DNA from: Macrostomum hystrix | Taxonomy: Eukaryota; Animalia; Platyhelminthes | Assembly: GCA_950097015.1 (NCBI GenBank) | Contig: CATNEN010000025.1 | Span: forward strand, 3,472,001 to 3,536,000 | DNA: 64,000 nucleotides | Reading direction: 5' to 3' | Part shown: positions 1 through 63,895 of the stretch, one piece after another | Layout: every line of letters starts with the position of its first letter | Numbering within the stretch: the stretch's first letter is position 1 | The notes under the pieces: model-generated | Seen by the model: the letters and a program-made list of their open reading frames with translations, nothing else | What the model was told of the DNA's origin: nothing | The model's database searches: none | Program-made: the position numbers and the translations under genes

Positions 1-898
1 CCGAGAAATAAAACAGTTGCAGCATTGTTGGGGTGGAAGTTAGGGCAGGTGTGGCTGCTTCACTAGTCCACAGACTGAACAGCTGTACAGTTTTCGGAAA
101 CGGGGCGCAATAGCTGTTGCCTGTGCCACTTTCTGAATATCTATGAACTATTTGGCTGAATGCCGGTAATCTAATTTTACCATCTTAAATGTGTAATATT
201 GGTTGAATACATGTACACGATAAAGTGTACACTCATAATAACGAAGCATATCACAATGACGGCAGCAGCTGACGATGACTAAACATGCACACGGAATAGA
301 TGACGCATCAGCAGCCGCCGCGCCACGCTGCCCCCTCCTGCAGCTGCTGCATATTTGGTATTCCAGCCAAATAGACTAGAGAAATTCCTTCCCTTTACAT
401 TGGACATATTCGCAAAGAACGCGCTGCTGCAGTGTCAGATGGCGCCCGAGCATGGTCCTATCGTACCGGGGGAATGATTGCGAGCCTAAAAATCTCTTTC
501 CGGCGAAGTATACAGCGAAGTCACCCCCCTCCAAGAGCATGCCGGCATGGCCTTCTGCAGTTTTAAAGTCATCCTCTTTCCCGATCCTCTCTGCGGGCCG
601 CACCTCCCGGCTGAACAGCATTCCTCGGACTTCAGCTGCTGCCGTGGCGCACGCTGGCGTTTGCTCGACCTCCTTTCCTATATAGCAAGAAAATCTTCTG
701 CCCAATCGGCCCCCCTATACCTGCCCGATCCACCAGTTCAACTACGAAATTCTGAAACGGCACCAATTCCCATTGTTGATAACTTTTCCGAAAGACCCTT
801 ACAGGCTTAATCGAATGTATGCCTGCCAAGATGCTTTAGAACTTTAATCCTTTAAATCTCTAATTTTGTTGCCATTTTCTCTATAGCTACAAACCGCC

Positions 899-3800
899 AT
901 GGATCATCTGCCCATCCGGAAGATGCTGACTGTGAAGCTGGACAAGGAGGGCGCTCTGGCAAGGTAAGCTGGGATGAGACTGAAGTGGAATTCCATGTGC
1001 AGCATACACACTGTGCGATCGCTGCGGTAAATTACTTTTTAAAGTCCTTTAGTCAATTAAAGGTATACTTTTTGGTATACCTCTTTCAACTACTTTTAAA
1101 GTCAATTGTTGTAAATAAAATTTTGTTCGTTGAAATCACTCGTTTTCGTTTTACATTTATTAGATGTTCAAATCCATGGTGCGTACTTGTAGTCGTGTGT
1201 TTTGGCTTGGTTTGATGACAATGCCACCGAGTCTTCGCAGCTTGATCACACTTTCATTTGAGGGTGTTTTATGCGATTCTCTAGAAATGTATTGTCCCAA
1301 CTGCAACAAACCATATTACTGTAGTGAGCTCAACTTGTTTAGAAAGTTCTTGTATTGTCCACAGACAACACACACAGGAGGTTATAACTGATCCGTTGAA
1401 AATTCATACTCCAGATCCTCGTCTGATCGTCACCAAATCGACGCCGCGGCTAGCAAGGACAAGCGATCGCATCATCGAGGCGCACCAGAGCCCATGAACA
1501 GCCTAGCGGATCGACCACGCGTGAGTTTTAGGTTTTTTGGAAAAAATCTATAAACTATGCGAATTCTATGATATACGCAGCGGACACGCACTGTACTCTC
1601 GATAACATAGACTATTTGCACGTACTGATTATTTAAACGTCCAAGACATTCAACAAACTACCTGCATATATTGCTTTGTAAGAACCCGTGAGACCTTTTA
1701 AGTACAGTTAAAAATTTTGTAAAAATTATAATAAGTTTAATGTACTTGTATACGAGTACAAATGGTCTAGAGTACTTTTTTAAACGTCCATGCATTCACG
1801 GTGATTTTATAAACACATTTTCGTTCAAGCGATCCGCCGAGGACAAGTTTCTATTTCTCCTTCCTTCCACCTCGCTGCCGCCGTCATTGTCATCGACTTC
1901 ACTTGCGTCATCGGCGGTGAAGTCCAGTTCAACACGCGAGACGCCTCCTCGGCATTGGGCCTACATTCGGGAGAAGCAGCAGCAGTACCAACAGTACAAT
2001 CGAGTGTCAGGAGCTCAACAGTCGACAAGCGGTGGCAAGGGACGATTCAAAGCTGATGAAAAATTGCCACAGCACTATCACAGCAGTCAGTCGCTGTACC
2101 AGCCTCCACATCGAAAGCAGCGCCACTCAAACAGTCTACCGCAGCAGCAGCAGCAGCAGCAGATGTTGATAGACAGGCCGTACTCACCCAGCGCCAGCGC
2201 CGCAGCAGCTGCGGCTCGAGCTCGTCGGCGTTCACCGCCTCCTGTACAGCGCCATGTGACATCTGACAATTCTGTGTTCACCATTACCTTCGATCCAGAC
2301 TACTACGACAGGTGCTATCGTCAGCAGCAACGTCAGCCAGATTTGGGACTAGCAGCGTCCTCTGCCATCGCCCTGTCAGCATCCTGCGCTAGTCGTTCTG
2401 CGAAAGCGCCGCCGTCGGTATCGCCGGCTCCGCCCGTCGGCGTTAGTGGGAAGAGAAAGAGACGGCCACCTCGACGGAGAGGTGGTGATCGGCTATGTCC
2501 ACGCAGTCAACAGCGACCAGATCCGGAGGGCGCACCGTCTACACCAGAAAAGGTGGATTCGCTTGGCGCGGCCGGCTACGGAGGCGCATCTGGAGGACAA
2601 TGGACTAGCTGTTGGCGTGACAAACGGCGAGACTCAGCCGCCTCAGATCTGGCATATCTACTCAGTAAGGAGCCGCTATTCTCGGACTATGGAAGCTGCT
2701 CGGATAGTGATACTGCCTCAACAATGTCCACAGACTCAAGAGGTCAAGTAGACGAAAAGGGCGTCATCATGCGTGGCTTTTCGTCAGCGAATTTGAACTC
2801 CAGCACCATGATCAAGTTTTCTATTATTGGCGCTGAAATACAAAACATCATAACGCAGTCTTTGCGAAAGGTAATTAGATTCTATTTAAATTTTCGTTTT
2901 ATCCCTATTTTTTATATGAAGATATGAATGTGAGACGAAATCGTAAGTCTAATTTTCTTATTTTATCAGGGGTTGTCGAACAAACTACAAAAACTGTCTG
3001 TTTGCATATTTGCTGGCCGTGACGAAAAAATATATAGCTACCCCGGCCTTTGGCAATTGCATTTTACCAAATCTTTTCTTCAAGAAAGTGCATGGTTTCA
3101 TTAAAATTCCTTCTACAGCCTTATCTCTTAAGTCAGCTCCAACGCAATACTTCTCCACATACCGAATGTATATGGCTGTATGCAAGTTATTTTTACCTTA
3201 GCAATTGCAATTGTCTTCTTCCTCCCGTACTCTGAGTATGTGTTTCAAAATATTATTTCAGATACTTTTATTTTCTTTAGGTGTTTTTCACTCCTGTTCC
3301 TATCATTTTTTGCAGTATTCAAACCTTAAAAGCGTGTATAAAAGCTAGAAACTAACTTTTTGTCACAATTTGCAGTTGTTATTTTTTGTTTAAATGACCG
3401 GAAAGGCGAAATTTTAACTCGACACGTGTTCCTTCATTTTCTGATTTACTTTGCGCTCAGGCACATATATAGCCTTTTCTAAAAGTTGTAATTCTCACGC
3501 ACGCTGTTTTATTTTACTTTTGATTTGCATATCTAGATATGGCGGCTGAAAAGAGCAACCAAACACAGGGTGTCCTAATGGTTTTGAAGCAAAAAATGCA
3601 AGCTCTAAAAAACGATTTGGAAAGGGTCACTGATGAACTTGAGCGGAAGGAAGAGGAGCTTAAAATGGAAATTGAGCTGCGCAACGCGGTAATATATAAA
3701 CAAAAATCTAATTTTTATTTTTATAGACTAGACAGAACGTAAAGCGACACGTTGCTTGCTTTGTTTATAGTTTTGCTAAATTAATACCTTTAGAAGCTAG

Positions 3801-6800
3801 TTAGCTAGCTTAACTAAGAAATGTATTAGCGTTTTTTCTGTATTTATTTTGTACAGATATCTTTTTACTGGTCAAAGAAAATTTAATTCTTTCAAGTGCA
3901 GAAAATATAGGAAAATTGTATTACATTTAATGTTTATACTGTACACTTTTGAAGTGTAATCTGCCAAGTATTGTATATAGTGAAAATGCAAATACATATA
4001 TGCTTATTTTCAATTTATAAAAAGTTTATATCAAAACATGTTGCATGCCTGAATATTTAATTTCACTTTTAAATAAGTTTTCAATGCCTGTTTTATATAA
4101 AGCATTTCGCCTATCATTTATTTTTTTAAATCTAGGCTGAGACAGAAGTTCAAAGTCTTGCTAGACGAGTGCAACTGCTTGAAGATGAGCTTGAGCAGAC
4201 CGAAAGCCGCTTGCAGGAGACAAACCAGAAGCTTCAAGAGGCAAGCAAAGTAGCTGAAGAAAGTGAAAGGTATGTTGTTTTCAAATAGTTTTTGTAATGC
4301 TAAGTAAATTGTTTCAAAAATATTTTAAGGAATGATTTTATATGATGTAACTACAAGTATAAGTATAAATGTAATTAGGCTATGTTTTATTTGGGTGTTG
4401 AGATTTTTATTATTTTAACTCATGCTATTTTAATATAGCATGAGTTCAATTCAGCCACCGGTTAATCAAATTTTTCTCAGGTCATGACAAAAGCATTTGA
4501 CTGCTGTGTTTCAATGGTTAATTTCTATATAGCTGCAAGCGTATTGTTTAAAGAAATGCATATGAAAAAGACTAATGCATCTGAGATTAATATGCAAAAG
4601 AGATAATTGAAAAAGTTTGCGAAATATCACGTTTTTTCAACTAGCCTGCCCATACTACTCTAGTTTGAATGCGGACGCTATCATAAAACAGGGCCCGCAA
4701 GGTTCTGGAGAATCGGCAGAACATTGACGACAGCCGAATCACCCAGCTTGAGCGGCTGGTGAACGACGCCACCGACTCCGCTGCCGACGCGGAGAGCAAT
4801 TTGGAGGAGGTGAACATCAATAACGGAATTGCTCGCTTCAATGTCTTCAGCAAATATATACTTTCTTTATTTAGGTTTTCTAGTTTAAAATCTACTCTTC
4901 ACATGGGGCAATGCACTTTAAATCCATTCGCACTACACAAACCCGCCAGATCCCGACAGACCCGGTCCCAGCAACTGTTGCTAAGCGACGAAGCGACAGC
5001 CGTCAGTGAAGGCTGTCGCTTTGACTTCGCAGACAGGTTCGAATCAAACTAGAACGTTTATTGTCAACTGCTGTGCTTTTCACTTGCCTGTGCAATTGCT
5101 ATTGTTATTGCTATTGCTATTGCACGACTCGTGTGCTGTGGGTTCTGGGAATTTTAGCATGAGATCTCCCAGCTTCGAATTCCCTATAGTACACTTGCCA
5201 GCTATTCGGTCAGCCGAAAACGGCGAGCTAGAAAACGTCGTTCGAAACACCGGGAACACTGGGGAAATGTGAATCAAAACACTTGGAAATTGCAGTTCAA
5301 AACACTGGGAAACGGCAGTTCAAAGCACTGGGAAACGGCAGTTCAAAGCACTGGGAAATGGCAGTTCAAAGCACTGGGAAACGGCAGTTCAAAGCACTGG
5401 GAAATGGCAGTTCAAAGCACTGGGAAATGGCAGTTCAAAGCACTGGGAAATGGCAGTTCAAAACACTGGGAAATGGCAGTTCAAAACACTGGGAAATGGC
5501 AGTTCAAAGCACTGGGAAATGGCAGTTCAAAACACTGGGAAATGGCAGTTCAAAACACTGGGAAATGGCAGTTCAAAGCACTGGGAAATGGCAGTTCAAA
5601 ACACTGGGAAATGGCAGTTCAAAGCACTGGGAAATGGCAGTTCAAAGCACTTGGAAATGGCAGTTCAAAACACTGGGAAATGGCAGTTCAAAACACTGGG
5701 AAATGGCAGTTCAAAACACTGGGAAATGGCAGTTCAAAACACTGGGAAATGGCAGTTCAAAACACTGGGAAATGGCAGTTCAAAGCACTGGGAAATGGCA
5801 GTTCAAAACACTGGGAAATGGCAGTTCAAAGCACTGGGAAATGGCAGTTCAAAGCACTGGGAAATGGCAGTTCAAAACACTGGGAAATAGCAGTTTGAAA
5901 CACTGGGAAATGTCAGTTCAAAACACTGGGAAATGACAGTTTGAAACACTGGGAAATGGCAGTTCAAAGCACTGGGAAACGGCAGTTCAAAGCACTGGGA
6001 AACGGCAGTTCAAAGCACTGGGAAATGGCAGTTCAAAGCACTGGGAAATGGCAGTTCAAAACACTGGGAAATGGCAGTTTGAAACACTGGGAAATGTCAG
6101 TTCAAAACACTGGGAAATGGCAGTTCAAAGCACTGGGAAACGGCAGTTCAAAGCACTGGGAAATGGCAGTTCAAAGCACTGGGAAATGGCAGTTCAAAGC
6201 ACTGGGAAATGGCAGTTCAAAACACTGGGAAATGGCAGTTCAAAACACTGGGAAATGGCAGTTCAAAGCACTGGGAAATGGCAGTTCAAAACACTGGGAA
6301 ATGGCAGTTTGAAACACTGGGAAACGGCAGTTGAAAACACTAGGAAATGGCAGTTTGAAACACTTGGAAATGGCAGTTTGAAACTCTGGGAAACGGCAGT
6401 TCAAAACACTAGGAAATGGCAGTTTGAAACACTGGGAAACGGCAGTTCAAAACACTAGGAAATGGCAGTTTGAAACACTGGGAAACTGCAGTTCAAAACA
6501 CTGGAGAATAGCGTTTGAAAACAATCGAAACTGGCAGTTGGAAACAATGGGAAATGGCGGTTGGAAACAACGGAAAATGTAGGTTAAAAATATTAAGAAC
6601 GACCTTCAATTTTATTTGAAAATTGAAGTTGATGAAAAAAACATTTCGCTTTTCTCAGGTTTCTAGTCCAATTCAATTAATCACACTTCATCTAATATAT
6701 TTCTCTAACTTCATGCATCTGTTCATAAGCTCATGAATAGTTGACATTTTTGCAATAATTGCATTGCATGCCAGTGCATCCCAGATCATGCTTAGACTTC

Positions 6801-9800
6801 AACTACCATATTTTCCACCGCTACTAACACCCAGGTACGCAGGAAATTGCAGTTGGCCGAAGACCAGCTGGCTAAGGCCGAGGATCGCTCCGAAGCCGCC
6901 GAGAAGAAGGTCAAGGAGCTCAGAGAAGAGTTGCACCTGGTCACCATTCATTTAAAGTCTTTGGAGCTCAGCGAAGCCAAGGTGCCTTTTTTGTGTTTTG
7001 GCTCTTCAGCTGTCCATGCATTGGAGGGACCCACCGAAATTTCTACCCCAAGCTAGTACCGACACCCATTCTGTAGTTGTCTGAGGACACAATTTGTTTT
7101 GAATATTTAAAGATGGCTGAGTGTCGAACTCCCGAAAATACATATCGCAGAACAGACGTTGCAAAAACATATCAAACCCAACATAAATAGAAAACTCCAA
7201 TAGTAACATCATCCAAGCACTTCGTTTAGTCTAAATTCAGCACCCTTTCTAACGCTCGCTACTACAATGTTCTTTTAATAATTATTACTGATAAATTGCC
7301 CATACGTTCTATCAAAAGCAAAAGACACTATCGGATTTGCAGTCGCATGTCGGTACCGCTCGCTTTGCGTTGTGTGTTGCTGGTACCAATTTATACTAGC
7401 CAACTCCTTCTTTGGAGGAATTTCAGGGGTGAAACCTAAAACTTGACTGTAAACTCAAAATCGGGTGAACTACTTACAGGACTGCATAGTAGGCGGCGCC
7501 TTAGAATGGCGTACTTGCATTAGATTGATTAGCGGATCACGATTATTTATTTTTTAGTGTCGTGTACAGTTCACGAGAAAAAGATTTTGAATCGAAATAC
7601 ATTTCGAAATACACTTTGTTACGTAATAAGGCAATAATAAAGTAAAACTTATATTATTATAAAAATTTATAAAAACTCGGAAACCCGAACCCGTCCCAAA
7701 GCCGACACGACCCGAACCCCGAACACCGCTAGTGGGCGCCCGCCAGCTCAATCTTTATGCAGGTTCATTCATATTGCCTCCACTTAGGTGGAGTGACAAC
7801 TTAAATATAGATTATATGACAATAACCTCGTCCCACCCAATTAACTAACTTCAGTCGAAATGTTCAGAAACGCCCCTCTAACTTTAGCAGTTGAAATAAA
7901 AGGATCCGCCTGCAGCGTCTCGTTTCAAGAATTTCGAAAATTAGCTTGTAACTCTTTAAAGCAAGTGTTGCCGTTTCCATGGCGTTTATAATTGATGGAC
8001 AATAATCTTGAAAGATTTTACAATTGCGTATGAACCTGTCACACTAACGTCGCCACCTTCACTGTCGCTGCCAAGCAGCAAGGTGTTGGAGCTCGAGGAG
8101 GCTCTGCGTGCCGCCGGCATCCGGTTGAAATCGCGCGAAATATCCGAGCAACTGGCCGCCAGCTGTCGGATGAGAAGCTGCGCCATGGTTCGAGCTCATT
8201 TCATTTCAATTGTCCTGACCTGCATGAATTCCATTGTTGAAATGCTTGGTTAAGCAATCTTATGCGGACAGCATGGCTTGACTTCTGTGTGGCTTCCATT
8301 AGCTCCGAGCATGCGGAGTGACTTTCCAGGATCTTTAGATCTGAATTCGAGGTGCTAAAACTGGTCCTCTTAAGTACAGGAACTCCAATTCTTGTGTGCG
8401 GAAGTGCAATAATTTCCGTCCAAAAGTACAGACTCTTCCGTACTAATTTAGTGCAACGTCCCTACGTAAAAACTAATTCACACAAAACATTTCATGTGCA
8501 ACAATAATCGACTACTAAGGGACGACTAAACACTTCCTCTTAGTACGAGCTTGAGTACATACTACTCTCAGTAGTCCCTGAGTATGCAATTGCATGCTGT
8601 GCGCCCTACCGACATGCGAATGCCATGTCCACCTCAGTTTAAACTCGCCATTGAATAATTTTGTCATTTCTTAGTGAAATACCTGCATGGGAAGCGTTAA
8701 AATGATGTCAATCACTAAAACCCGCCTCCATTTTTCTCTCTCACCGATGCAGTCGGCACAGAAGGAGGAGAGCCACGAGAGTCTCATAATAGACCTCACC
8801 CTGAAACTCAAGGAGGTGAGCTCATCGTCTGCTCTCTTTGATTCTTGGAAAATTCATTTCTACTCGTAGAAAACAAATCGGGCAAATGAGCTCAATTGTT
8901 GTGTGACTTAAAATGAGAATTTTTTAAAGGCTCAGAACATAATCCAATGACTGCCGTTCTACCCATGCTGCCCCGTTTCTGCCAACTTAATCTTCTTGAA
9001 ATCTTAGCTCCTATGCTCCCCCCAACCCCCATTCTTCCCCTAACTCCCCATTCTTCCCACCAAACTTCCCACTCTTCCCCTAACTCCCCATTTCTCCCCC
9101 TCAACTCCCCATTTCTCCCCCTTAACTCCCCATTCTTCCCCCCAACACCCCATTTCTCCCCCTTAACTCCCCATTCTTCTCCCCCAACTACCCATTCTTC
9201 CCCCAACTCCCATTCATCCCCCCAACTACCCATTCTTCTCCCCAACTCCCTATTCTTCCTCTAACTCCTCGCCGAATTCCAGTTGTCATTCCTTTAGCAC
9301 TTATAAGACAGCCATTGGTCAATGTTTTCCCGATAAGCATTCAACTGCCCAAACACCAACCAATGACGGGACTGCTCGCGCTGATCAAATTTAGGCCGAG
9401 GAAAGGCTGGAGACCGCCGAACGTGAGGCGACTAGTCGACAGAAAGAAATCGATCAGACGGAAGGTAAAAAACGTTGGTTAAAAAGATCGTCCAATTTCT
9501 TCAAGAAGATTTCTCTATTGAGGTAGCAGAAGTCAACGGATTTGGATTGTTTGATAGGAATTCAAAATTAAGAATTCAAGAGAGCAGACAAGCCAAGCTA
9601 CTACGGTTTTTATTCGGATATTCGATTGTTTTAACTTTCGAAACAAAATATATTTCCTCTAAAAATGAACTTAACTCGCTAACACTACTTGTCTTTTTCT
9701 TACAACGCGAGTAGGGTGATGCGCATTTTTCTCCATTTTATGAAATTGATTTTAAATTTGAAAGAAAAATATGGCCAACACCAAATAACAATGCGCAGAG

Positions 9801-11441
9801 CGAGAGACGCAGAGAGGCAGCCGAGAGAGCCGCGTTTGCTCGCCAAGTGGAGGTTGAGCAGCTGGAAGGTATTATTAATTACTAAAGTCCGATTGGAGGA
9901 TTTAGTTTAGACATTTAATAAACTGTACACATAGCGCATTGCATGTGATCACATATCTGTGCCATTGGCACAGTGCTTCTCTGCACTCCAATTCGATTTT
10001 ATCACAATTGCTACTCATTAGTAGATATTTCAAAAATGTCAAGTTCAACGCACTTATTTTATTTAATGCCGTTACTGAAGGTACTCACTTTCCTATAATT
10101 CTTGTTTTTCTGAATTTTGGCTATCTTTTCTTACATAATTTGTGTTTTTTTGGCCCCAAATTCCGTACTAAATAAGCGGTGAGTAAGTGGTTTCGTATTT
10201 CGCCTCGTCAGCTAATTAGCCTATCTTTTCAAAGTTGATGCAATTTTTTCTGCTGTTTAATTCATAATTATTTTTTTCCAGCCCGGCTTCATCAGCAGAG
10301 TCAGCTGGTGGTTAAACTCAAGCGCGACCTGGACCAACTGTTTCAGGCTGTGAAATCTGCGGCTTAGGCCTCTATAGATTAGTTAGAGCTTCAATTTTTA
10401 GTCAGCTTTGGAATTTTTTGGAATTTTTAATTTGCCTTCTTTGTGTCTTCTATGATGCGTTCCTTTGAAAAACAATTAACACACTTTGTTAATTAAAGCT
10501 TCGAAGCTTGTGATAGGAGTAGAGAAGCTTTTAGTACAGTGGTTTGAGTTTTGTACTTTTGACCTAGAGGTCGTGAGTTCAAATCTCAGCCAAATAGGGA
10601 ACTATATTTGTGTCGTTTGACAAGACACTCGATGCCATATTGCCCTACTTCAGCTTCACAATAATAATAACTGCAGGAGGGCTGCGGGAAATCACACATC
10701 ATCTGGTGACACTAGACCTGCAGCCAGTGAGGAGGCAATTCTGCCATTCCAGCTGACTCCTGAGCACACTCACACAGGTGTGTACATCTGCCCTGACTTT
10801 CTTATCGTCAGGCAGTGTACACTCTCACTGTGCCTTGGGGGTTGGCCCTCAAGGGCGTAAATTGGACGACAAGCCCCCCCCAAGCCTTCTCTCCGCGGCT
10901 GCGCCCCAAAATGAATGTGGCCTCGCCGCGGAATCGAGCTCAGTGACCTTGGTACGAGAGGCAAACGCGTTAACCGCTCTGCCACTCAGCCCCCAAACCA
11001 GTCCATGGACTGAACAGCTGTACACAGCTTTTGGATGCACCAGGCAGTAGAACTGCGGCTAAGCATCTGACTAATCTGGGCTAGGTGTCATTTCTTGAAC
11101 TCTCTAACTATAAGAAGGTGCAAAATGAAAAGTTGAAGAAGTTTTATCTGCCATAGTAGCTTGGCTGTTGTGTTGTCTCATTTTCTTTGTATTTTAGAAA
11201 GCGATTTCTCTTAGTAAACTTTACTGACCTTCGCTTAGTTTGCTTTCTTGTATGCCTTCTGCTACCTCGAGAAGTTATTTTTAAGTATTTTCCTATTCAA
11301 CTATCATTTATAATTTAACACAATAAATTAATCTAAACTTCCAAATCATTAACTGCAGAGGAGCTTCAACAAAAGAAGGACCATCTTGGCAAGCTGAAAG
11401 CCGACTTGGAACAATACTACAAGGATATCGAAAGCATTTAG
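899..11441 (+). CDS. Tm1: Tropomyosin, long atypical isoform (~608 aa): join(899..963,1415..1520,1830..2870,4136..4269,4692..4809,6835..6981,8753..8815,9395..9464 or 9799..9868,10282..10367 or 11359..11441)
   Basis: The core exons translate to a tropomyosin coiled coil ([26 protein letters not shown]; [17 protein letters not shown]; [25 protein letters not shown]). Exon sizes of 134/118/147(=71+76)/63/70/83 nt match canonical tropomyosin exons. All junctions are GT-AG with matching phase. The three upstream exons are open and phase-compatible (2, 0, 0) with the 4136 exon, but their joining is inferred. Confidence 0.8.
1830..2870 (+). CDS. Tm1: Large low-complexity (Ser/Arg/Gln/Ala/Pro-rich) exon of the atypical tropomyosin isoform
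   Basis: 347-codon open frame inside ORF 1740..2927, GC-rich between AT-rich flanks. It ends [21 protein letters not shown]|gtaatt in phase 0. The 5' acceptor (ttcaag| at 1829) is less certain. Confidence 0.7.
3539..3688 (+). CDS. Tm1: Tropomyosin alternative first exon (exon 1b type, short ~254-aa isoform)
   Basis: [50 protein letters not shown]|gtaata: 50 codons, phase 0 into AETEV, typical of low-molecular-weight tropomyosin N-termini. Confidence 0.88.
5281..6560. repeat. 23-bp minisatellite (gttcaaa(g/a)cactgggaaatggca), ~55 copies, tropomyosin intron
   Basis: Direct tandem periodicity that decays at both ends. It explains ORFs 5269..6458. Confidence 0.97.
8079..8253 (+). other. Orphan tropomyosin exon-6-like copy (alternative terminal exon or decaying exon)
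   Basis: ctaac branch motif, then cag|C AAG GTG: [25 protein letters not shown] aligns with [25 protein letters not shown] of 6835..6981. There is no GT donor at the expected end (8154), and the frame runs on to a stop at 8253. Confidence 0.5.
8990..9265. repeat. C-rich degenerate tandem repeat (ccccattct.../ctcccc)
   Basis: Repeated C4-C6 runs; the minus strand is G-rich. Confidence 0.85.
9799..9868 (+). CDS. Tm1: Tropomyosin exon 8b (alternative to 9395..9464)
   Basis: cag|[23 protein letters not shown]+G|gtatta: 70 nt, same size and phases (0/1) as 8a ([23 protein letters not shown]). Confidence 0.75.
10282..10367 (+). CDS. Tm1: Tropomyosin alternative terminal exon 9a
   Basis: ttttccag|, phase 1, (A)[27 protein letters not shown]; similar size to 9b (11359..11441, [27 protein letters not shown]). 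Confidence 0.75.
10531..11085 (+). mobile_element. tRNA-derived SINE family A copy, interrupted by a family B copy
   Basis: tRNA-like head (gaggtcgtgagttcaaatct), body tgtgtc...caagacact and 3' part cagtccatggactgaacagc, all shared with 14362..14655. Confidence 0.75.
10660..10990 (-). mobile_element. tRNA-derived SINE family B
   Basis: Minus-strand head agtggcagagcggttaacgcgtttgcc...gagctcgattcc (A/B-box-like) and (TTA)n tail. Near-identical blocks occur at 38640, 53190 and 61668. Confidence 0.88.
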
Positions 11442-14870: not shown

Positions 14871-17165
14871 TTAAACAAGGCTGGATTCCACAAACTCCAG
14901 GAATCTTCTAGAGTAGATCTCCGGCTTTACAGAGCTGAGCTGCGCCTCGTTGCCGTGCTTCATTGTCTTGTAGGTCTTGGCCGTTCTCTTGCGAACGCCG
15001 TATTTTGTTAGAATGTCGATTAGGCCGATGAAGTACACCAGCTGCGATTGGTCGGCGGCTGGCACAGCGAATCGGCGCTCCCTGGCCGCGGCTGCGGCTG
15101 CGTCTGGAGCGGCGGCGATCGACACACCGATGCCGAGCTCTAACTCGTTGCCGGAGCTGGCCTGATCGTCTAGCTCGGCGCCGTCGCCCTCGGATGCTGC
15201 TGCCGCCGAGCCGCCAGCCGAGGCGCCTCTAGCATCTTCACAGCCGCCGCCAGCAGCCGGATCATGAATGCCAACTAACAGGGAATAGTCCATGAGGTGG
15301 CAGCGAGCCAGGAACTCCGAGTCGCTATGCAGTGTGGCCATCAATCTGGCCTTGGCCTCAGGTCCAACATGAAGTTTCTCACCGGCTCCAACAAAATCAA
15401 CATCCTTCAGAGTTGGCAACTCTTTTGCTTTCTCTTTCTCGGTGGCTTCGCGCGAAATTCTGCTGCCCTTCAAGTCGTATTTGCGATGGATTTTTAAGTC
15501 GGCGCTAAACACGGAACTGCGAGTGCAGACGGGGTGGCGTCCGACCATCAGGATAATGCAAGGTCATTGTCCGCGCTCTCTTTATCTACCTTTCCTATCT
15601 CTCATCCTAGTCCTGCTTTTCTCTCATCATTTCCTTTCTTCCCACTCTACTCTCTCCTCTCCCCACTCTACTCTCTCCTCTCCCCACTCTACTCTCTCCT
15701 CACTCTACTCTCTCCACTCTACTCTCTCCTCTCCCCACTCTACTCTCTCCTCTCCTCACTCTCCTCTCTCCTCTCCCCACTCTACTCTCTTTTCTCCCCA
15801 CTCTACTCTATCCCCTCCCCACTCAACTCTCTCCTCTCCTCTCCCCACTAAACTATCTTCTATCCTCTCACCACTCAACTCTCTCTCCCCACTCAACTCT
15901 CTCCTCTCCCCACTCAACTCTCTCCTCTCCCCACCCAACTCTCTCCTCTCCCCACTCAACTCCCTCCTCTCCCACTCTACTCTATCATCTCCCCACTCTA
16001 CTGTCTAATCTCCAAACTACTGCATCGAGAAATGCCTAACTCACCGCATAACTAGCAGGTAGTGCTCGGTATCTTCCACGGTGGCTCGGTACATGCCAAC
16101 AAACTGCGGCAACAGCGTATCAGCCGAGCGTTCAACAATGTAAGCGTGATAGGCCTGCAGCAGATTGTGCACCTGTTCAACTTCGTCGCTAGATATAGTC
16201 TTAATCACGTAGTGCAGATTGTAAGACCAGATCATGTTCTGCGAGCTGTCCCTAACTGGCTGCCGCTTAGTCCAACTGTCCGCGTAGTGCAAAGCGTCGA
16301 TGCCGAACTTCGAGCGCAATTCTTGAAACACCATTGGACAGTACTCCTTGAATTTGAACTTGCTGGGCATGTTGTCTCTGGTTTAGGGGTGATGGAGATT
16401 GATCATGTCAATTACTTGTGTCTTTTGGGCCGCATTCCAATTTAAACCTATCAGAAGCTCGCACGACTCCATTCAGGCTAATTGATAGCTTCATGCAACC
16501 TCTCCAGCCAATTAGCAGCTCCCTGCCACCACCTCTCCAGCCAATTAGCTTCATGCTTACCATCCAGCCAATTAGCTTCATGCCTACCATCCAGCCAATC
16601 AGCTTCATGCTTGCCATCCAAGCCAATTAGCTTCATGCTTACCATCCAGCCAATCAGCTTCATGCCTACCATCCAGCCAATCAGCTTCATGCTTACCATC
16701 CAGCCAATTAGCTTCATGCTTACTATCCAGCCGCTTAAGCCAATTAGCAGCTTCCTGCCACCTTTCCAGCCAGTCAGTAGTTTCGATTCTATGTCTAGCC
16801 AATCAGAAGCTATCGATCAACAAATCAGTCAATCATTCACTTACTTGTTAAATAAATAATTGTCCACTTTGACTTTTTGGAAGCTTTTAAAATCGTCTGG
16901 CAGCAGCATTGTTCGCTTGGTGACGTGGCTCAGCTGGATTAGCTGGAATTGAATAGTTAAAAGACAACACTATGCAAGGTAGGTCCAAAATTTATTGAAC
17001 TATTTATTTATTGAGTCAATCGATTAACCCCAAAATATTTGTTCAACTCACTGAGTGATTGATGCCCCACATAATGACTGATTTAAGAGGCTCGCTGGAA
17101 CGGAATAGCTTCAGCTTCTGGCGAACACCTTTCACCTTGTGGCTCTTCTTAACCTGCACTTCCAT
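14871..17165 (-). CDS. PIP4K2: Phosphatidylinositol-5-phosphate 4-kinase type II (~396 aa): complement join(17052..17165,16845..16942,16045..16377,14871..15516)
   Basis: Motifs QKLKLFRSSEPLKSVIMWGINHS, LLPDDFKSFQKVKVDNYLFNK, FKFKEYCPMVF, RKYDLKGS, LMDYSLLVGIHD and YFIGLIDILTKY. The activation loop KRTAKTYKTMKHG has Ala where type I enzymes have Glu. All splice sites are GT-AG and in phase. Confidence 0.95.
15640..16010. repeat. ~23-bp pyrimidine-rich minisatellite (ctctactctctcctctcccca), PIP4K intron 3
   Basis: Tandem periodicity; explains ORFs 15442..16008. Confidence 0.9.
16490..16790. repeat. ~27-bp minisatellite (catccagccaatcagcttcatgcttac), PIP4K intron 2
   Basis: Tandem periodicity; each unit contains CCAAT. 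Confidence 0.9.
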
Positions 17166-19916: not shown

Positions 19917-43016
<23,100 letters not shown>

Positions 43017-43289
43017 TTTATTTAATTAAGTCTCTGTTATAATTGATGACTGTCATTTTGTACTATGCCATCGGCAGCTCCGTGATTGGATAGTTTGATC
43101 AACTGAAGCCCTTGGCAACTCCATGGCAACTAAGAAAAGAAAAATATGTGCTTATTCCTGTTTTTTAGACTTAAAACGGATCCCATACTAAAAATGTTGT
43201 ACTTGTGACACCTTGCTGACTCAAATTATCACTTGGTTGTTATCCTTACTATCTAAATCCTGATTGTTTGTTGTTCCCACCACTCGTTG

Positions 43290-43930
43290 AATTGTGGGGG
43301 TCAAAGCTCTCACAGAATCCTGATTGGTTGGGGTCAAAGCTCTAACAGAATCCTGATTGGTGGGGGTCAAAGCTCTCACAGAATCCTGATTGGTGGGGGT
43401 CAAAGCTCTCACAGAATCCTGATTGGTTGGGGTCAAAGCTCTAACAGAATCCTGATTGGTGGGGGTCAAAGCTCTCACAGAATCCTGATTGGTGGGGGTC
43501 AAAGCTCTCACAGAATCCTGATTGGTTGGGGTCAAAGATATCGCGGAATCCTGATTGGTGCGGGTCAAAGCTCTCACAGTATCCTGATTGGTGGGGGTCA
43601 AAGCTCTCGCGGAATCCTGATTGGTGGGTGTCAAAGATATCGCGGAATCCTGAATGGTTGGGGTCAAAGCTCTCACAGTATCCTGATTGGTGGGGGTCAA
43701 AGCTCTCGCGGAATCCTGATTGGTTGGGGTCAAAGCTCTCACAGAATCCTGATTGGTGGGGGTCAAAGCTCTCGCGGAATCCTGATTGGTTGGGGATCAA
43801 AGCTCTCGCGGAATCCTGATTGGTTGGGGTCAAAGCTCTCACAGTATCCTGATTGGTGGGGGTCAAAGCTCTCGCGGAATCCTGATTGGTGGGTGTCAAA
43901 GATATCGCGGAATCCTGATTGGCTGAGGTC
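43290..43930. repeat. 33-bp minisatellite (tcctgattggtgggggtcaaagctctcacagaa)
   Basis: Tandem periodicity downstream of Shal; explains ORFs 43221..43943. Confidence 0.95.
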
Positions 43931-44631
43931 TATAGACCCCTGACTAGGAACACTTCTAATTTAGGTTACCATGGAGATCTTTCTAGTGTAAAATGTTAGT
44001 TTCGATATTTTTCTGACTGAATATATCCACTATCGTCCATCATCCCTTCACAGTATTTTTCACGCCAGAACTGCCTAAATTTGTCACCCAGAAATTATTT
44101 GCCGTCATATTAAATTCAACTCAGTCTCAGTTTCGTCATCATTAAAGTCTATATAATAGGCATTCTAAATTAGAATTCGTTTTTGCGGCTCAAAATGCTA
44201 TTTTACATTTAAGGACAATATTAACAATTATTATTCGCGCGAACTTAGACAAGGAACGATCAATTATGCATCATTGCGCTTTAGTTGCACTTGCCTCAAT
44301 TCATCACTGTTGAATCCTCCACTGTTCAGTGTGAAACTGTAGATAATTCATTTACTAATGTGTTATTGAATACAACAAACGATATAGAACAAAGTGTGGC
44401 TGACTCATACATAATATGAATGTATTGATATTTTCAAACTATTACGAAACATTATATCATAAATATAGCGAGAAAGCACTTCATATTTATCGAGACTGTT
44501 TATTAATAAATGTTGATCACTGATTATTGAAAAGGAAGAGTTTTTTGTTCTGCAGTTGGTGAATTTTTTGCTTGAATCATACATATACACAGGTAGGTCA
44601 ATCAAATAGCAAATTGCCCCAGAATTCAGTC

Positions 44632-56444
<11,813 letters not shown>

Positions 56445-61500: not shown

Positions 61501-63895
61501 CCAATGAAAAAATTGAGATGCTGAAGGGAAGCGACTATCACCATGTTGGCATGAAGATTAGCAACAACTGGATGTGAGTCTTTGCTGATCGATTCATTTA
61601 CGGAATTGAGTTCGCTTTAGTTGGTTTTAAACACATTTTCTGACGCGGGGAAACAAGGCTCAACCCTCATAATAAAATAATGATTGCAGGAGGGCTGCGG
61701 GCAGTGGCACATCATTTGGCGACACTGGACCCGCAGCGAGGAGGCAATTCTGCCCATTTCGCTGACTCCCGATCACACACGCAAACATATTCTGTACGCA
61801 GGCCCACATTCACACAGGTGTGTACATCTGCCCTGACTTTCTCATCGTCAGGCAGCTAGTGTACACTCTCACTGTGCCTTGGAGGTTGGCCCTCATGGGC
61901 TTAAATTGCACGACAAGCCCACAAGCCTTCTCTCTGCGGCTGCGCCCCAAATGAATGTGGCCTCGCCGTGGAATCGAGCTCGGGGACCTTGGCGCGAGAG
62001 GCAAACGCGTTAGACCTCTCTGCCACTAACCCCCCAACCTCCTGAGCCAATCAAAAAGTTTTGTCAGCGAAGGACTAAATGACCTAAATACATTCCGTTA
62101 ACCCGACCTGCAGTCTACCAATGGAGGACTGCGGCAGCATGTTCGTCAGCAACAAGGCTCTGGACATCGCCAAGCCCAGCTCCGTGTTCTCCGTGGTAGT
62201 CGCCGACTGCTCCGAGTGCACAGTGGGGCTGCTTCGCATGGACCCGATGTGGTTCAATTTTGCCCAGAAGTTTCACAGCTTCGCAGACATCACGGAGCGG
62301 GCGACTGTGAAGCTAGAATTCAGTGATTTTGGCAAGGAGTTGTGAGTATTGAATACCATATGTGGGCAGGGCATTTATTCCTGGAAATGTCACTGATGAA
62401 AATATTCAACGATCGCTACCTTCGAGATGTAAACTCAGAAAATGAAATTACATTTTTTGTGTAACACTAACTGTATGTACTTTAATAGATTCACTCTCAA
62501 TAAATAAGTATTAAATGTTGCATCTCCACTGATTCAATGTGCTCTCAATATGCAGGCTTGATGAGTGTAACTTCAATATTTTCAATAACTTTATATCGCT
62601 GAATATCCTGACGATGCTTTGAAAGTTAGTTAGTTCATCGTAAACGTCAGAAAATTTTCATCCAAATTTTGGACCGTCAAGAAAGTCGGTCATTTGGTTT
62701 GGGAGCTGTCGTGAGGTAGGCAGTGGGTATTTTTAATACCTCTCCAGTGTCCTTCCCACGGGCAATAGCCTGGTCTTTCTGCTGCTATTGTGCACTGATT
62801 TCACTGAGTCCCACCAACCAATCGCATCGCAGCAAGCTCAGCTGCGTTAAGGACGACGGCAAGCTGGCGACGCCAGCCACGTGGAGAACGGCCGCATTCG
62901 CTTCGGACACGGACCAGTTTGTGGTGTCCATCGAGGTGCGCAAAGCCGCACTCAGCAACGAGTCGAACATGGTGCACATCCTCCTGAACAACACGACGGT
63001 GCATCAGTTCATCGTGAAATCGACCGCTCTGTCGCGCGGCGGCCAGCAGCAGAAGAGCGGCGAAGTGACGCAGACGGTGCACGAAGGCATCTTCGGTTAC
63101 GTCAGCTGCCCCAAAGGCAAAGCCGGCCGGTCAGCCTTCTACCCGCTGGCCGAGGCCGACAGTCCGATCTACAAGACGTCTGGCTCAAGCGCGCCAGCTG
63201 CGACCAAACCGAAAAAGGACGAAGCTGAAGCCGCTACGAGCGCTGACAGCGATCTGGCGGTTGGAACCCCGCTGCACACGCCGCCGTTTCGCGTCCTCTG
63301 CCACCGGATGTTGCAGGCGGCGTCGGGTTCAACAGTTGGCCGAGTTCGCGAGGCAGTTTCGGCCGAGTTAAAGCGTGTTCGCGACCGCCTCGATGCGGAG
63401 GCCAAGAAGCTGACGAATGCAATCGAGAAGGCCGGCGACGGAGTATTTCTGCAGCAGCTGCGCTGGGCGGAGCTCACCGCCACCGCTGAGCGAATCGAAG
63501 CCTATTTGAAGACTCGACTCGGCGACGACCTGGAAGTGTTCGGCACCGACCAGCTGGCTGAGCTGCGCGCCGCATTGGCGGCCACTTCGCAGGCGGCAGT
63601 TGAAGCCCTGCTGCCTGACCGTCTCTGGCGTATTCGGCAAGTCAAGGAGGCGCTGAAGGTAGCCACCGAGGAGGCCGAGAAGAAGGGCCGAATCCGAGCA
63701 TTGGACTGCCTGGCTGAGGCAGACAAAAAGTACGGCCGATTGCAGCTTGTCGAAGCGTTACAGTGGCTGCACGAGAGAGTGAGTCCTCGGACCTTGGAGA
63801 CCATGCAAGGCGGTGGTCAACTTCGTAGCGAATTCGAACTCGGGAGGTTTTTAGCCTTCATAAATGGCACATACCTTAACCAGCACAAGCCATAG
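58587..63895 (+). CDS. Uncharacterised ~845-aa protein: H3-tail-like N-terminus, polyQ/acidic linker, LRR region, degenerate Roc/COR-like region, helical C-terminus: join(58587..58913,59238..59381,59473..59598,59702..59849,60310..60494,60618..60734,61374..61573,62114..62341,62833..63895)
   Basis: Nine GC-rich exons with GT-AG sites and matching phases (0,0,0,1,0,0,2,2) give one open frame of 2538 nt. LRR-like segments: LSFRGEAYITDQGIRWL and VDLQHCPAITANAVALL. The domain labels are from motif reading only. Confidence 0.85.
58974..59130 (+). mobile_element. SINE family A, centrally deleted copy
   Basis: Head gcgacttgaaggtcgggggttcgattcc joined almost directly to cagtccacagactgaacagctg. Confidence 0.75.
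59940..60260. repeat. 21-bp pyrimidine-rich minisatellite (ttctcatccaccgctctcccc)
   Basis: Tandem periodicity in intron 4 of the 58587 gene. Confidence 0.92.
60770..61350. repeat. 20-bp purine-rich minisatellite (gagaatgtcaggagggtagg)
   Basis: Tandem periodicity in intron 6 of the 58587 gene. Confidence 0.92.
61668..62035 (-). mobile_element. SINE family B, near full length
   Basis: tRNA-like head and shared body and tail; matches 38640..38978. Confidence 0.88.

Follow-up and report, generated by a model that had tools for sequence, protein, structure and literature searches.

In the Drosophila oocyte, oskar mRNA is carried to the posterior by kinesin-1, for which the RNA-binding atypical tropomyosin aTm1 (Tm1-I/C) serves as the adaptor. 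In the fly, the unique 20-25 residues of aTm1 and the next ~50 residues of its coil make up the binding site for the kinesin-1 heavy chain (Khc); Khc binding and oskar localisation are both strongly reduced in the double mutant of I267 and L271, and a triple mutant in which L279 is also changed no longer binds Khc (PMC8247599). The same work describes aTm1 as "present in Drosophilidae", calls its 20-residue kinesin-binding extension "unique", describes the aTm1-binding site on kinesin-1 as evolutionarily conserved, and reports a crystal structure in which T277 of aTm1 is looped out (PMC8247599). Our literature search found no description of aTm1-type isoforms outside Drosophila. Here, we analyse a tropomyosin gene lying within 64,000 nucleotides (nt) of genomic sequence from the free-living flatworm Macrostomum hystrix (contig CATNEN010000025.1, positions 3,472,001 to 3,536,000; hereafter the window, in whose own positions all coordinates are given). 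Our favoured reading, which we hold to be fairly probable, is that this gene expresses an atypical isoform with a helix homologous to the kinesin-binding extension of fly aTm1, and that the isoform acts as a kinesin-1/RNA adaptor, a role suggested by analogy with the fly.

Expression of an atypical exon

The open reading frame (ORF) at 1830-2870 is 1041 nt long, exactly 347 codons, reads in phase 0 at both ends, and is flanked by an AG acceptor (1828-1829) and a GT donor (2871-2872). As an earlier note on this DNA had read it, the phase-0 donor of this low-complexity exon fits the acceptor (AG at 4134-4135) of the exon starting at 4136, which matches Pfam Tropomyosin at 2.4e-9 and can be aligned with vertebrate tropomyosins of the Protein Data Bank (PDB) over their residues 81-124. 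Words sampled from the large exon were 80-90% present in four runs of one study, and these runs are taken to be RNA-derived because their contigs are spliced. The contigs were mapped on window positions 1-5200, and the junction between 2870 and 4136, which the earlier note had proposed looking for in RNA reads, was found in spliced contigs of all four runs. A single 1412-nt contig of run X1 (record 1) links 728-961, 1413-1520, 1830-2868 and 4134-4164, and record 7 of run X2 contains 478 nt of the large exon followed by 134, 122 and 145 nt of the next three exons, the final 145 nt matching exon 5/6 at 6837. No insertions or deletions relative to the window were seen in the contigs of the four runs. 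The atypical isoform is a real, expressed, alternative product of the flatworm tropomyosin gene.

The low-complexity composition of the large ORF and its lack of a Pfam match could be taken to mean that it is a separate gene, a chance open frame or an assembly artefact. Against this, GT..AG joints were found on both sides of the exon in 4/4 runs, single contigs span from the ATG at 899 into exon 3, and the end of the exon is kept across flatworm classes; we count this explanation as refuted.

The gene structure envisaged by the earlier note held in one respect, in that the large exon does feed the exon at 4136. It did not hold in others: the acceptor before 1830 is internal, the ORF opens further upstream with the ATG at 899, the large exon is the third of its isoform and not the first, and exon 1b provides a second route, giving at least two alternative 5' routes (the large atypical exon and exon 1b) into exon 4136. 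The ATG at 899 stands in the context gccATGG with an in-frame stop four codons upstream. The first 21 residues read from it are a canonical tropomyosin N-terminus, 55% identical to residues 1-21 of Schistosoma tropomyosin in alignment A2; the identity of the first exon rests on this alignment because 21 residues are too short for phmmer. Coding sequence ahead of exon 3 amounts to 65 + 106 + 1041 nt, or 404 codons. Downstream, the exons have the sizes and phases classical for tropomyosin (PF00261), the sizes being 134, 118, 147 (fused 5/6), 63 and 70 nt. Low-molecular-weight tropomyosins made through exon 1b likewise enter exon 3 by an alternative 5' route, with 50 ordinary coil residues, their own start and an end unlike the aTm1 helix. 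Exon 1b is not covered by contigs in run X2, although such a hole is no proof of absence.

Two observations on the transcribed sequence may be added. A TATATAG stretch lies at 679-685, upstream of the start of the atypical transcript. Compared with the assembly, the RNA contigs of every run carry C for T at 2415 (Ser>Pro) and those of two runs carry G for A at 4205 (Ser>Gly), while changes at 1991 and 2204 are synonymous; these four differences probably reflect strain or allele.

Comparison with the kinesin-binding helix of aTm1

When the last 40 residues of the large exon were searched with phmmer against 177,635 PDB sequences, the single match was chain 7bjs_C, from a structure of Drosophila aTm1 bound to kinesin heavy chain (E 0.39). 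Query residues 15-39 align without gaps to 7bjs_C positions 7-31, or aTm1 256-280 (chain position equals aTm1 residue minus 249, verified with I267, L271, T277, Q278 and L279; PMC8247599), and the next exon, at 4136, aligns to positions 33-76, so that these collinear matches abut at the splice junction. The fly junction given in the earlier note proved essentially correct, the PDB chain reading ...MMKFNIIRNELHNIMNTQLKR and then, across the junction, AESEVAALNRR; the comparison of the exon end with Drosophila Tm1-I/C that the same note had suggested gives an alignment exactly at the junction.

Anchored in this way, the ungapped alignment has 11/25 identities (44%) and a BLOSUM62 score of 55, a score reached by 0/200,000 shuffles, and the next best of the 36,794 25-mers from all six frames of the window scores 25. 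Fly I267, L271 and L279 correspond to I333, I337 and L345 here (codons 2826-2828, 2838-2840 and 2862-2864), and the hydrophobic spacing F-I-I-I-(5)-L is that of fly F264-I267-L271-I274-(5)-L279. The one-residue heptad skip at fly T277 is preserved in the flatworm helix, as are polar residues outside the core (S258, T260, K263, E270 and N273), and of the eight helix columns that are invariant among flatworms, five (S, T, I, E, N) have the same residue in the fly. The flatworm profile by itself also matches 7bjs_C positions 7-31 (E 0.11). We rejected a profile match to Ino80 (8a5d_G), in which the acidic motif described below was paired with "DYKDDDDK", a stretch resembling a FLAG tag. Searching the PDB with the entire exon returned low-complexity noise only.

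Tests across the junction were made with natural database proteins (P0007 and P0001). Residues 236-326 of Schistosoma P0007 match 7bjs_C with an E of 2.1e-15 and 59.9 bits, gapless over chain positions 7-76, in contrast to about 29 bits (E 1e-5) for the same query against ordinary tropomyosins, where the alignment comes only from the exon-3 part. For P0001 residues 225-331, the only PDB matches are three aTm1 chains (E 4.9e-8). Because the gene family, the intron position and phase, the register, the heptad skip and the constrained polar residues all agree, homology between the flatworm helix and that of fly aTm1 is very likely on the sequence comparisons.

The locus can thus be set beside fly aTm1 (PDB 7BJS, 7BJG and 7BJN) in some detail. 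In both, a tropomyosin gene yields an isoform whose specific 5' exons encode a long disordered, low-complexity N-terminal region (404 residues before the coil here) joined in phase 0 to the residues 81-125 exon, and in both an extension of about 20-25 residues with the I267/L271/L279 core, predicted to be helical in the flatworm, lies directly N-terminal of the shared coil. The flatworm protein differs in starting with the canonical 21 N-terminal tropomyosin residues. Besides the helix, it has conserved RPDPEG and PLFSDYG motifs. Additionally, the fly coil is shortened to the equivalents of residues 81-165 and followed by a low-complexity C-terminal tail, whereas the coil of the flatworm atypical isoform is probably not shortened.

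Several points weigh against our favoured reading. The comparison spans two phyla only, those of the flatworms and the fly; the likeness between them extends over about 25 residues, which on their own gave the E values stated above for searches of the PDB, 0.39 with the single sequence and 0.11 with the profile; and an exhaustive phmmer search of 1.84 billion proteins detected no relatives of the N-terminal ~275 residues of the exon. Record 7 of run X2 runs from the atypical exon into exons 3, 4 and 5/6 (in short-read contigs, with the 3' end unphased), and the canonical tropomyosin N-terminus may keep the protein in actin-related functions.

A rival account accepts the isoform as real and as conserved among flatworms but takes its likeness to aTm1 to be convergent. 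Any helix continuing the exon-3 coil would come to have a similar hydrophobic pattern, and the isoform would have an actin-linked, muscle or tegument role without kinesin. The short shared stretch and marginal stand-alone E values would fit such an account, as would the canonical N-terminus, the apparently full C-terminal coil, and the Schistosoma and Rodentolepis gene models that place the exon as a cassette between exons 2 and 3. A heptad pattern alone is nevertheless insufficient to produce the match: the end of exon 1b, which is also coil feeding exon 3, scores -25 with 1/25 residues identical to aTm1, and thousands of coiled coils in the PDB were left unmatched. The polar non-core residues and the unusual heptad skip held in common with the fly, together with the identical intron position and phase, speak against convergence as well, and we regard it as rather unlikely.

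Another account would give the protein a main role in intermediate-filament-like polymers, built of head, rod and tail, instead of a motor adaptor. A long low-complexity head before a coiled-coil rod is in keeping with this, and fly Tm1-I/C forms such polymers according to work cited in PMC10512467. On the other hand, no low-complexity tail joined to the atypical isoform was found in the contigs, and the part conserved across phyla is the kinesin-binding helix and not the low-complexity regions. Flatworms are also not known to lack cytoplasmic intermediate filaments, a further consideration against this account. A chiefly filament-forming role seems to us very improbable.

Flatworm relatives and a putative adaptor role

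Word-index protein searches came back blank with each of three queries: the whole exon (where low-complexity words flood the search), the final 86 residues of the exon and a read-through ORF of 395 residues. The exhaustive phmmer search (1.84 billion representatives) returned ten matches at E <= 1e-3, nine of them genuine (E 3e-9 to 1e-3), each covering only query residues ~275-347; the tenth, P0006 (4241 residues, matched in 4 stretches), was rejected as low-complexity noise. The named relatives are all flatworms: Schistosoma margrebowiei (A0AA85AP20), S. haematobium ("tropomyosin, variant 2", XP_051064558.1 / A0A922II96) and related species, Trichobilharzia regenti (VDQ02023.1) and Rodentolepis nana (A0A0R3TJB9). 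An ESM Atlas feature search gave chance-level scores only (<=0.81), and a metagenome scan with the module profile gave 0 relatives.

Alignment of the flatworm sequences yields three conserved elements, RP[DE]PEG, [DE]PL[FY]SDYG.xSD and LNS.T.I...II..E..N....L.K, and by sequence the module that they form is conserved across flatworms. It is followed by the exon-3 coil in P0001, P0007 and P0009. All ORF-called genomic relatives read K and then V (GTN) at the end of the module, so the donor position is conserved. The Schistosoma record L005 has the atypical exon, with an acceptor, 300 nt ahead of exon 3; in L004 its place is between exons 2 and 3. Similar to the gene described here, the flatworm gene models have a module ending in ...LNSGTLIKxAIIGxELQNVxKxSLRK with the exon-3 coil directly after it and the donor at the equal position. 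They differ in being automatic annotations in which the link to aTm1 is unstated, in having N-terminal exon parts unrelated in sequence to those of this exon, and in placing the atypical exon after exons 1 and 2, with an 80-residue coil before the insert, whereas the exon-2 coil is absent from the transcripts here.

The closest relative of the module is P0001 (51% identity, E 3.4e-9), a complete ORF of 331 residues found identically in three independent transcript assemblies (L001-L003), one a Joint Genome Institute (JGI) metatranscriptome and two from Logan runs. It differs in having its own non-tropomyosin N-terminus and a divergent coil that ends 60 residues past the junction. This short-coil architecture is closer to that of fly aTm1 and shows that a short-coil version exists in some organism.

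Much of the atypical region is predicted to be disordered. Residues 1-220 of the exon are strongly basic (pI 10.8, net charge +21), and Pfam matched 0 families in exon 1830-2870 and likewise in its Schistosoma counterpart. In an AlphaFold2 model of the last 127 residues (window 2490-2870), made with the family alignment, the only confident helix spans residues 104-126 (pLDDT 85-96); the remainder is mostly disordered, with pLDDT below 55 over most of the modelled part.

The adaptor reading that we favour would work as follows. The transcript, starting near 728, encodes the canonical 21-residue tropomyosin N-terminus first, next a basic, low-complexity, mostly disordered stretch of about 380 residues, and then the conserved module of about 120 residues, which contains RP[DE]PEG, the acidic PLFSDYG motif and an amphipathic helix of about 25 residues. 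Joined in phase 0 to the exon-3-equivalent coil, this helix extends the coiled coil N-terminally. By the fly structure, in which aTm1 and Khc make a 1:2 antiparallel triple coil, the extended coil would open and pack antiparallel on the alternative cargo-binding coil, itself conserved, in the tail of the kinesin-1 heavy chain, and the basic disordered region would engage RNA or ribonucleoprotein (RNP) cargo. Given the evolutionary conservation described for the partner site on kinesin-1, we infer from the fly that binding of kinesin-1 is the most likely function of the flatworm helix; a role in carrying RNA cargo is likewise suggested by analogy. The reading predicts that the helix binds the kinesin-1 tail, that the three residues I333, I337 and L345 are required for this, and that cross-species rescue should succeed.

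More tentatively, the kinesin-1-binding helix may have existed already in the last ancestor shared by flatworms and flies, making the tropomyosin-based kinesin-1/RNP adaptor an ancient protostome device, with RP[DE]PEG and PLFSDYG.xSD as docking sites for further partners of a transport complex. This wider proposal is possible, but we hold it with some doubt. If true, it would date the origin of this pairing of motor and adaptor to the protostome ancestor or earlier, and the pairing would be no drosophilid novelty. The suggestion in the earlier note that aTm1-type isoforms are not an insect invention gains support, within the two phyla compared, from tropomyosin genes of trematodes and cestodes, in which the module precedes the exon-3 equivalent. 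What is new here is that a free-living flatworm expresses the same extension at the same exon junction and that trematodes and cestodes have kept it, along with two newly seen conserved short motifs. Tropomyosin is a studied antigen in parasitic flatworms, in which this isoform had gone unrecognised.

Gene model and other features of the window

The exons, splice joints and sequence elements of the gene are collected in Table 1.

Table 1. Exons, splice joints and elements of the M. hystrix tropomyosin gene, in window positions (runs are the four RNA-derived runs).
Feature	Position	Strand	Details
First exon of atypical transcript	728..963	+	5' untranslated region (UTR), ATG 899, 21 codons + 2 nt; contigs of 4 runs start at 728/731
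Second exon	1415..1520	+	106 nt = 1 nt + 35 codons; disordered; relatives not found
Large atypical exon, third of its isoform	1830..2870	+	347 codons; rich in S, R, A, P, Q
Alternative short-isoform exon 1b	3539..3688	+	50 codons, own start (MAAEKSNQ...ELRNA); contigs from 3507
Shared exon 3 equivalent	4136..4269	+	134 nt; equivalent to vertebrate residues 81-125, fly aTm1 282-325
Shared exon 4 equivalent	4692..4809	+	118 nt; joint 4269>4692 in 4 runs
Shared fused exon 5/6 equivalent	6835..6981	+	147 nt, 49 codons; post-exon-4 contig ends in 4 runs match 6837 onward; splice sites
Predicted exon 7 equivalent	8753..8815	+	63 nt; splice sites, size and sequence like tropomyosin exon 7
Predicted exon 8 equivalent	9799..9868	+	70 nt
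Splice joint	963>1415		GT..AG; 4/4 runs
Splice joint	1520>1830		GT..AG; 4/4 runs
Splice joint	2870>4136		GT..AG; 4/4 runs
Splice joint	3688>4136		GT..AG; 3/4 runs
Splice joint	4269>4692		GT..AG; 4/4 runs
Basic patch, 13 residues	2448..2486	+	Candidate RNA-binding or nuclear-import patch
Motif R-P-[DE]-P-E-G	2514..2531	+	Alignment A1; P12, E13, G14 nearly invariant in 10 flatworm sequences
Acidic-aromatic motif P-L-F-S-D-Y-G, then S/D/E	2673..2693	+	L, S, D, Y, G invariant in alignments A1 and A3
Helical coil extension, 26 residues	2793..2870	+	Equivalent to fly aTm1 residues 256-281

Within the gene, a single contig, from run X2 alone, connects 4948-5036 with an exon at 8079 that resembles an alternative exon 6. 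The upstream piece shares its frame with read-through from exon 4 and has an ATG near 4905, and the join may be a further 5' route to a very short tropomyosin. Tropomyosin-like open stretches at 9395-9464 and 11337-11438 (both on the + strand, the latter ending in a stop) look like alternative variants of exon 8 and exon 9. The intron between exon 4 and exon 5/6 contains a 23-bp minisatellite of 57 copies (91% match) at 5255-6569, and many further minisatellites occur in the window, for example near 40050-41050, 43220-43940 and 48400-52660.

Elsewhere in the window, an exon of a PIP5K-family phosphatidylinositol phosphate kinase lies at 14871-15548 on the - strand (Pfam PIP5K, 2.5e-48). Pfam gave no match for an open frame of 390 residues at 62723-63895 (+), where the window ends on the right. 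A large first exon at 19917-21026 (+) belongs to a Shal/Kv4-type potassium channel, with Pfam matches to the Shal-type N-terminus, BTB_2 and Ion_trans.

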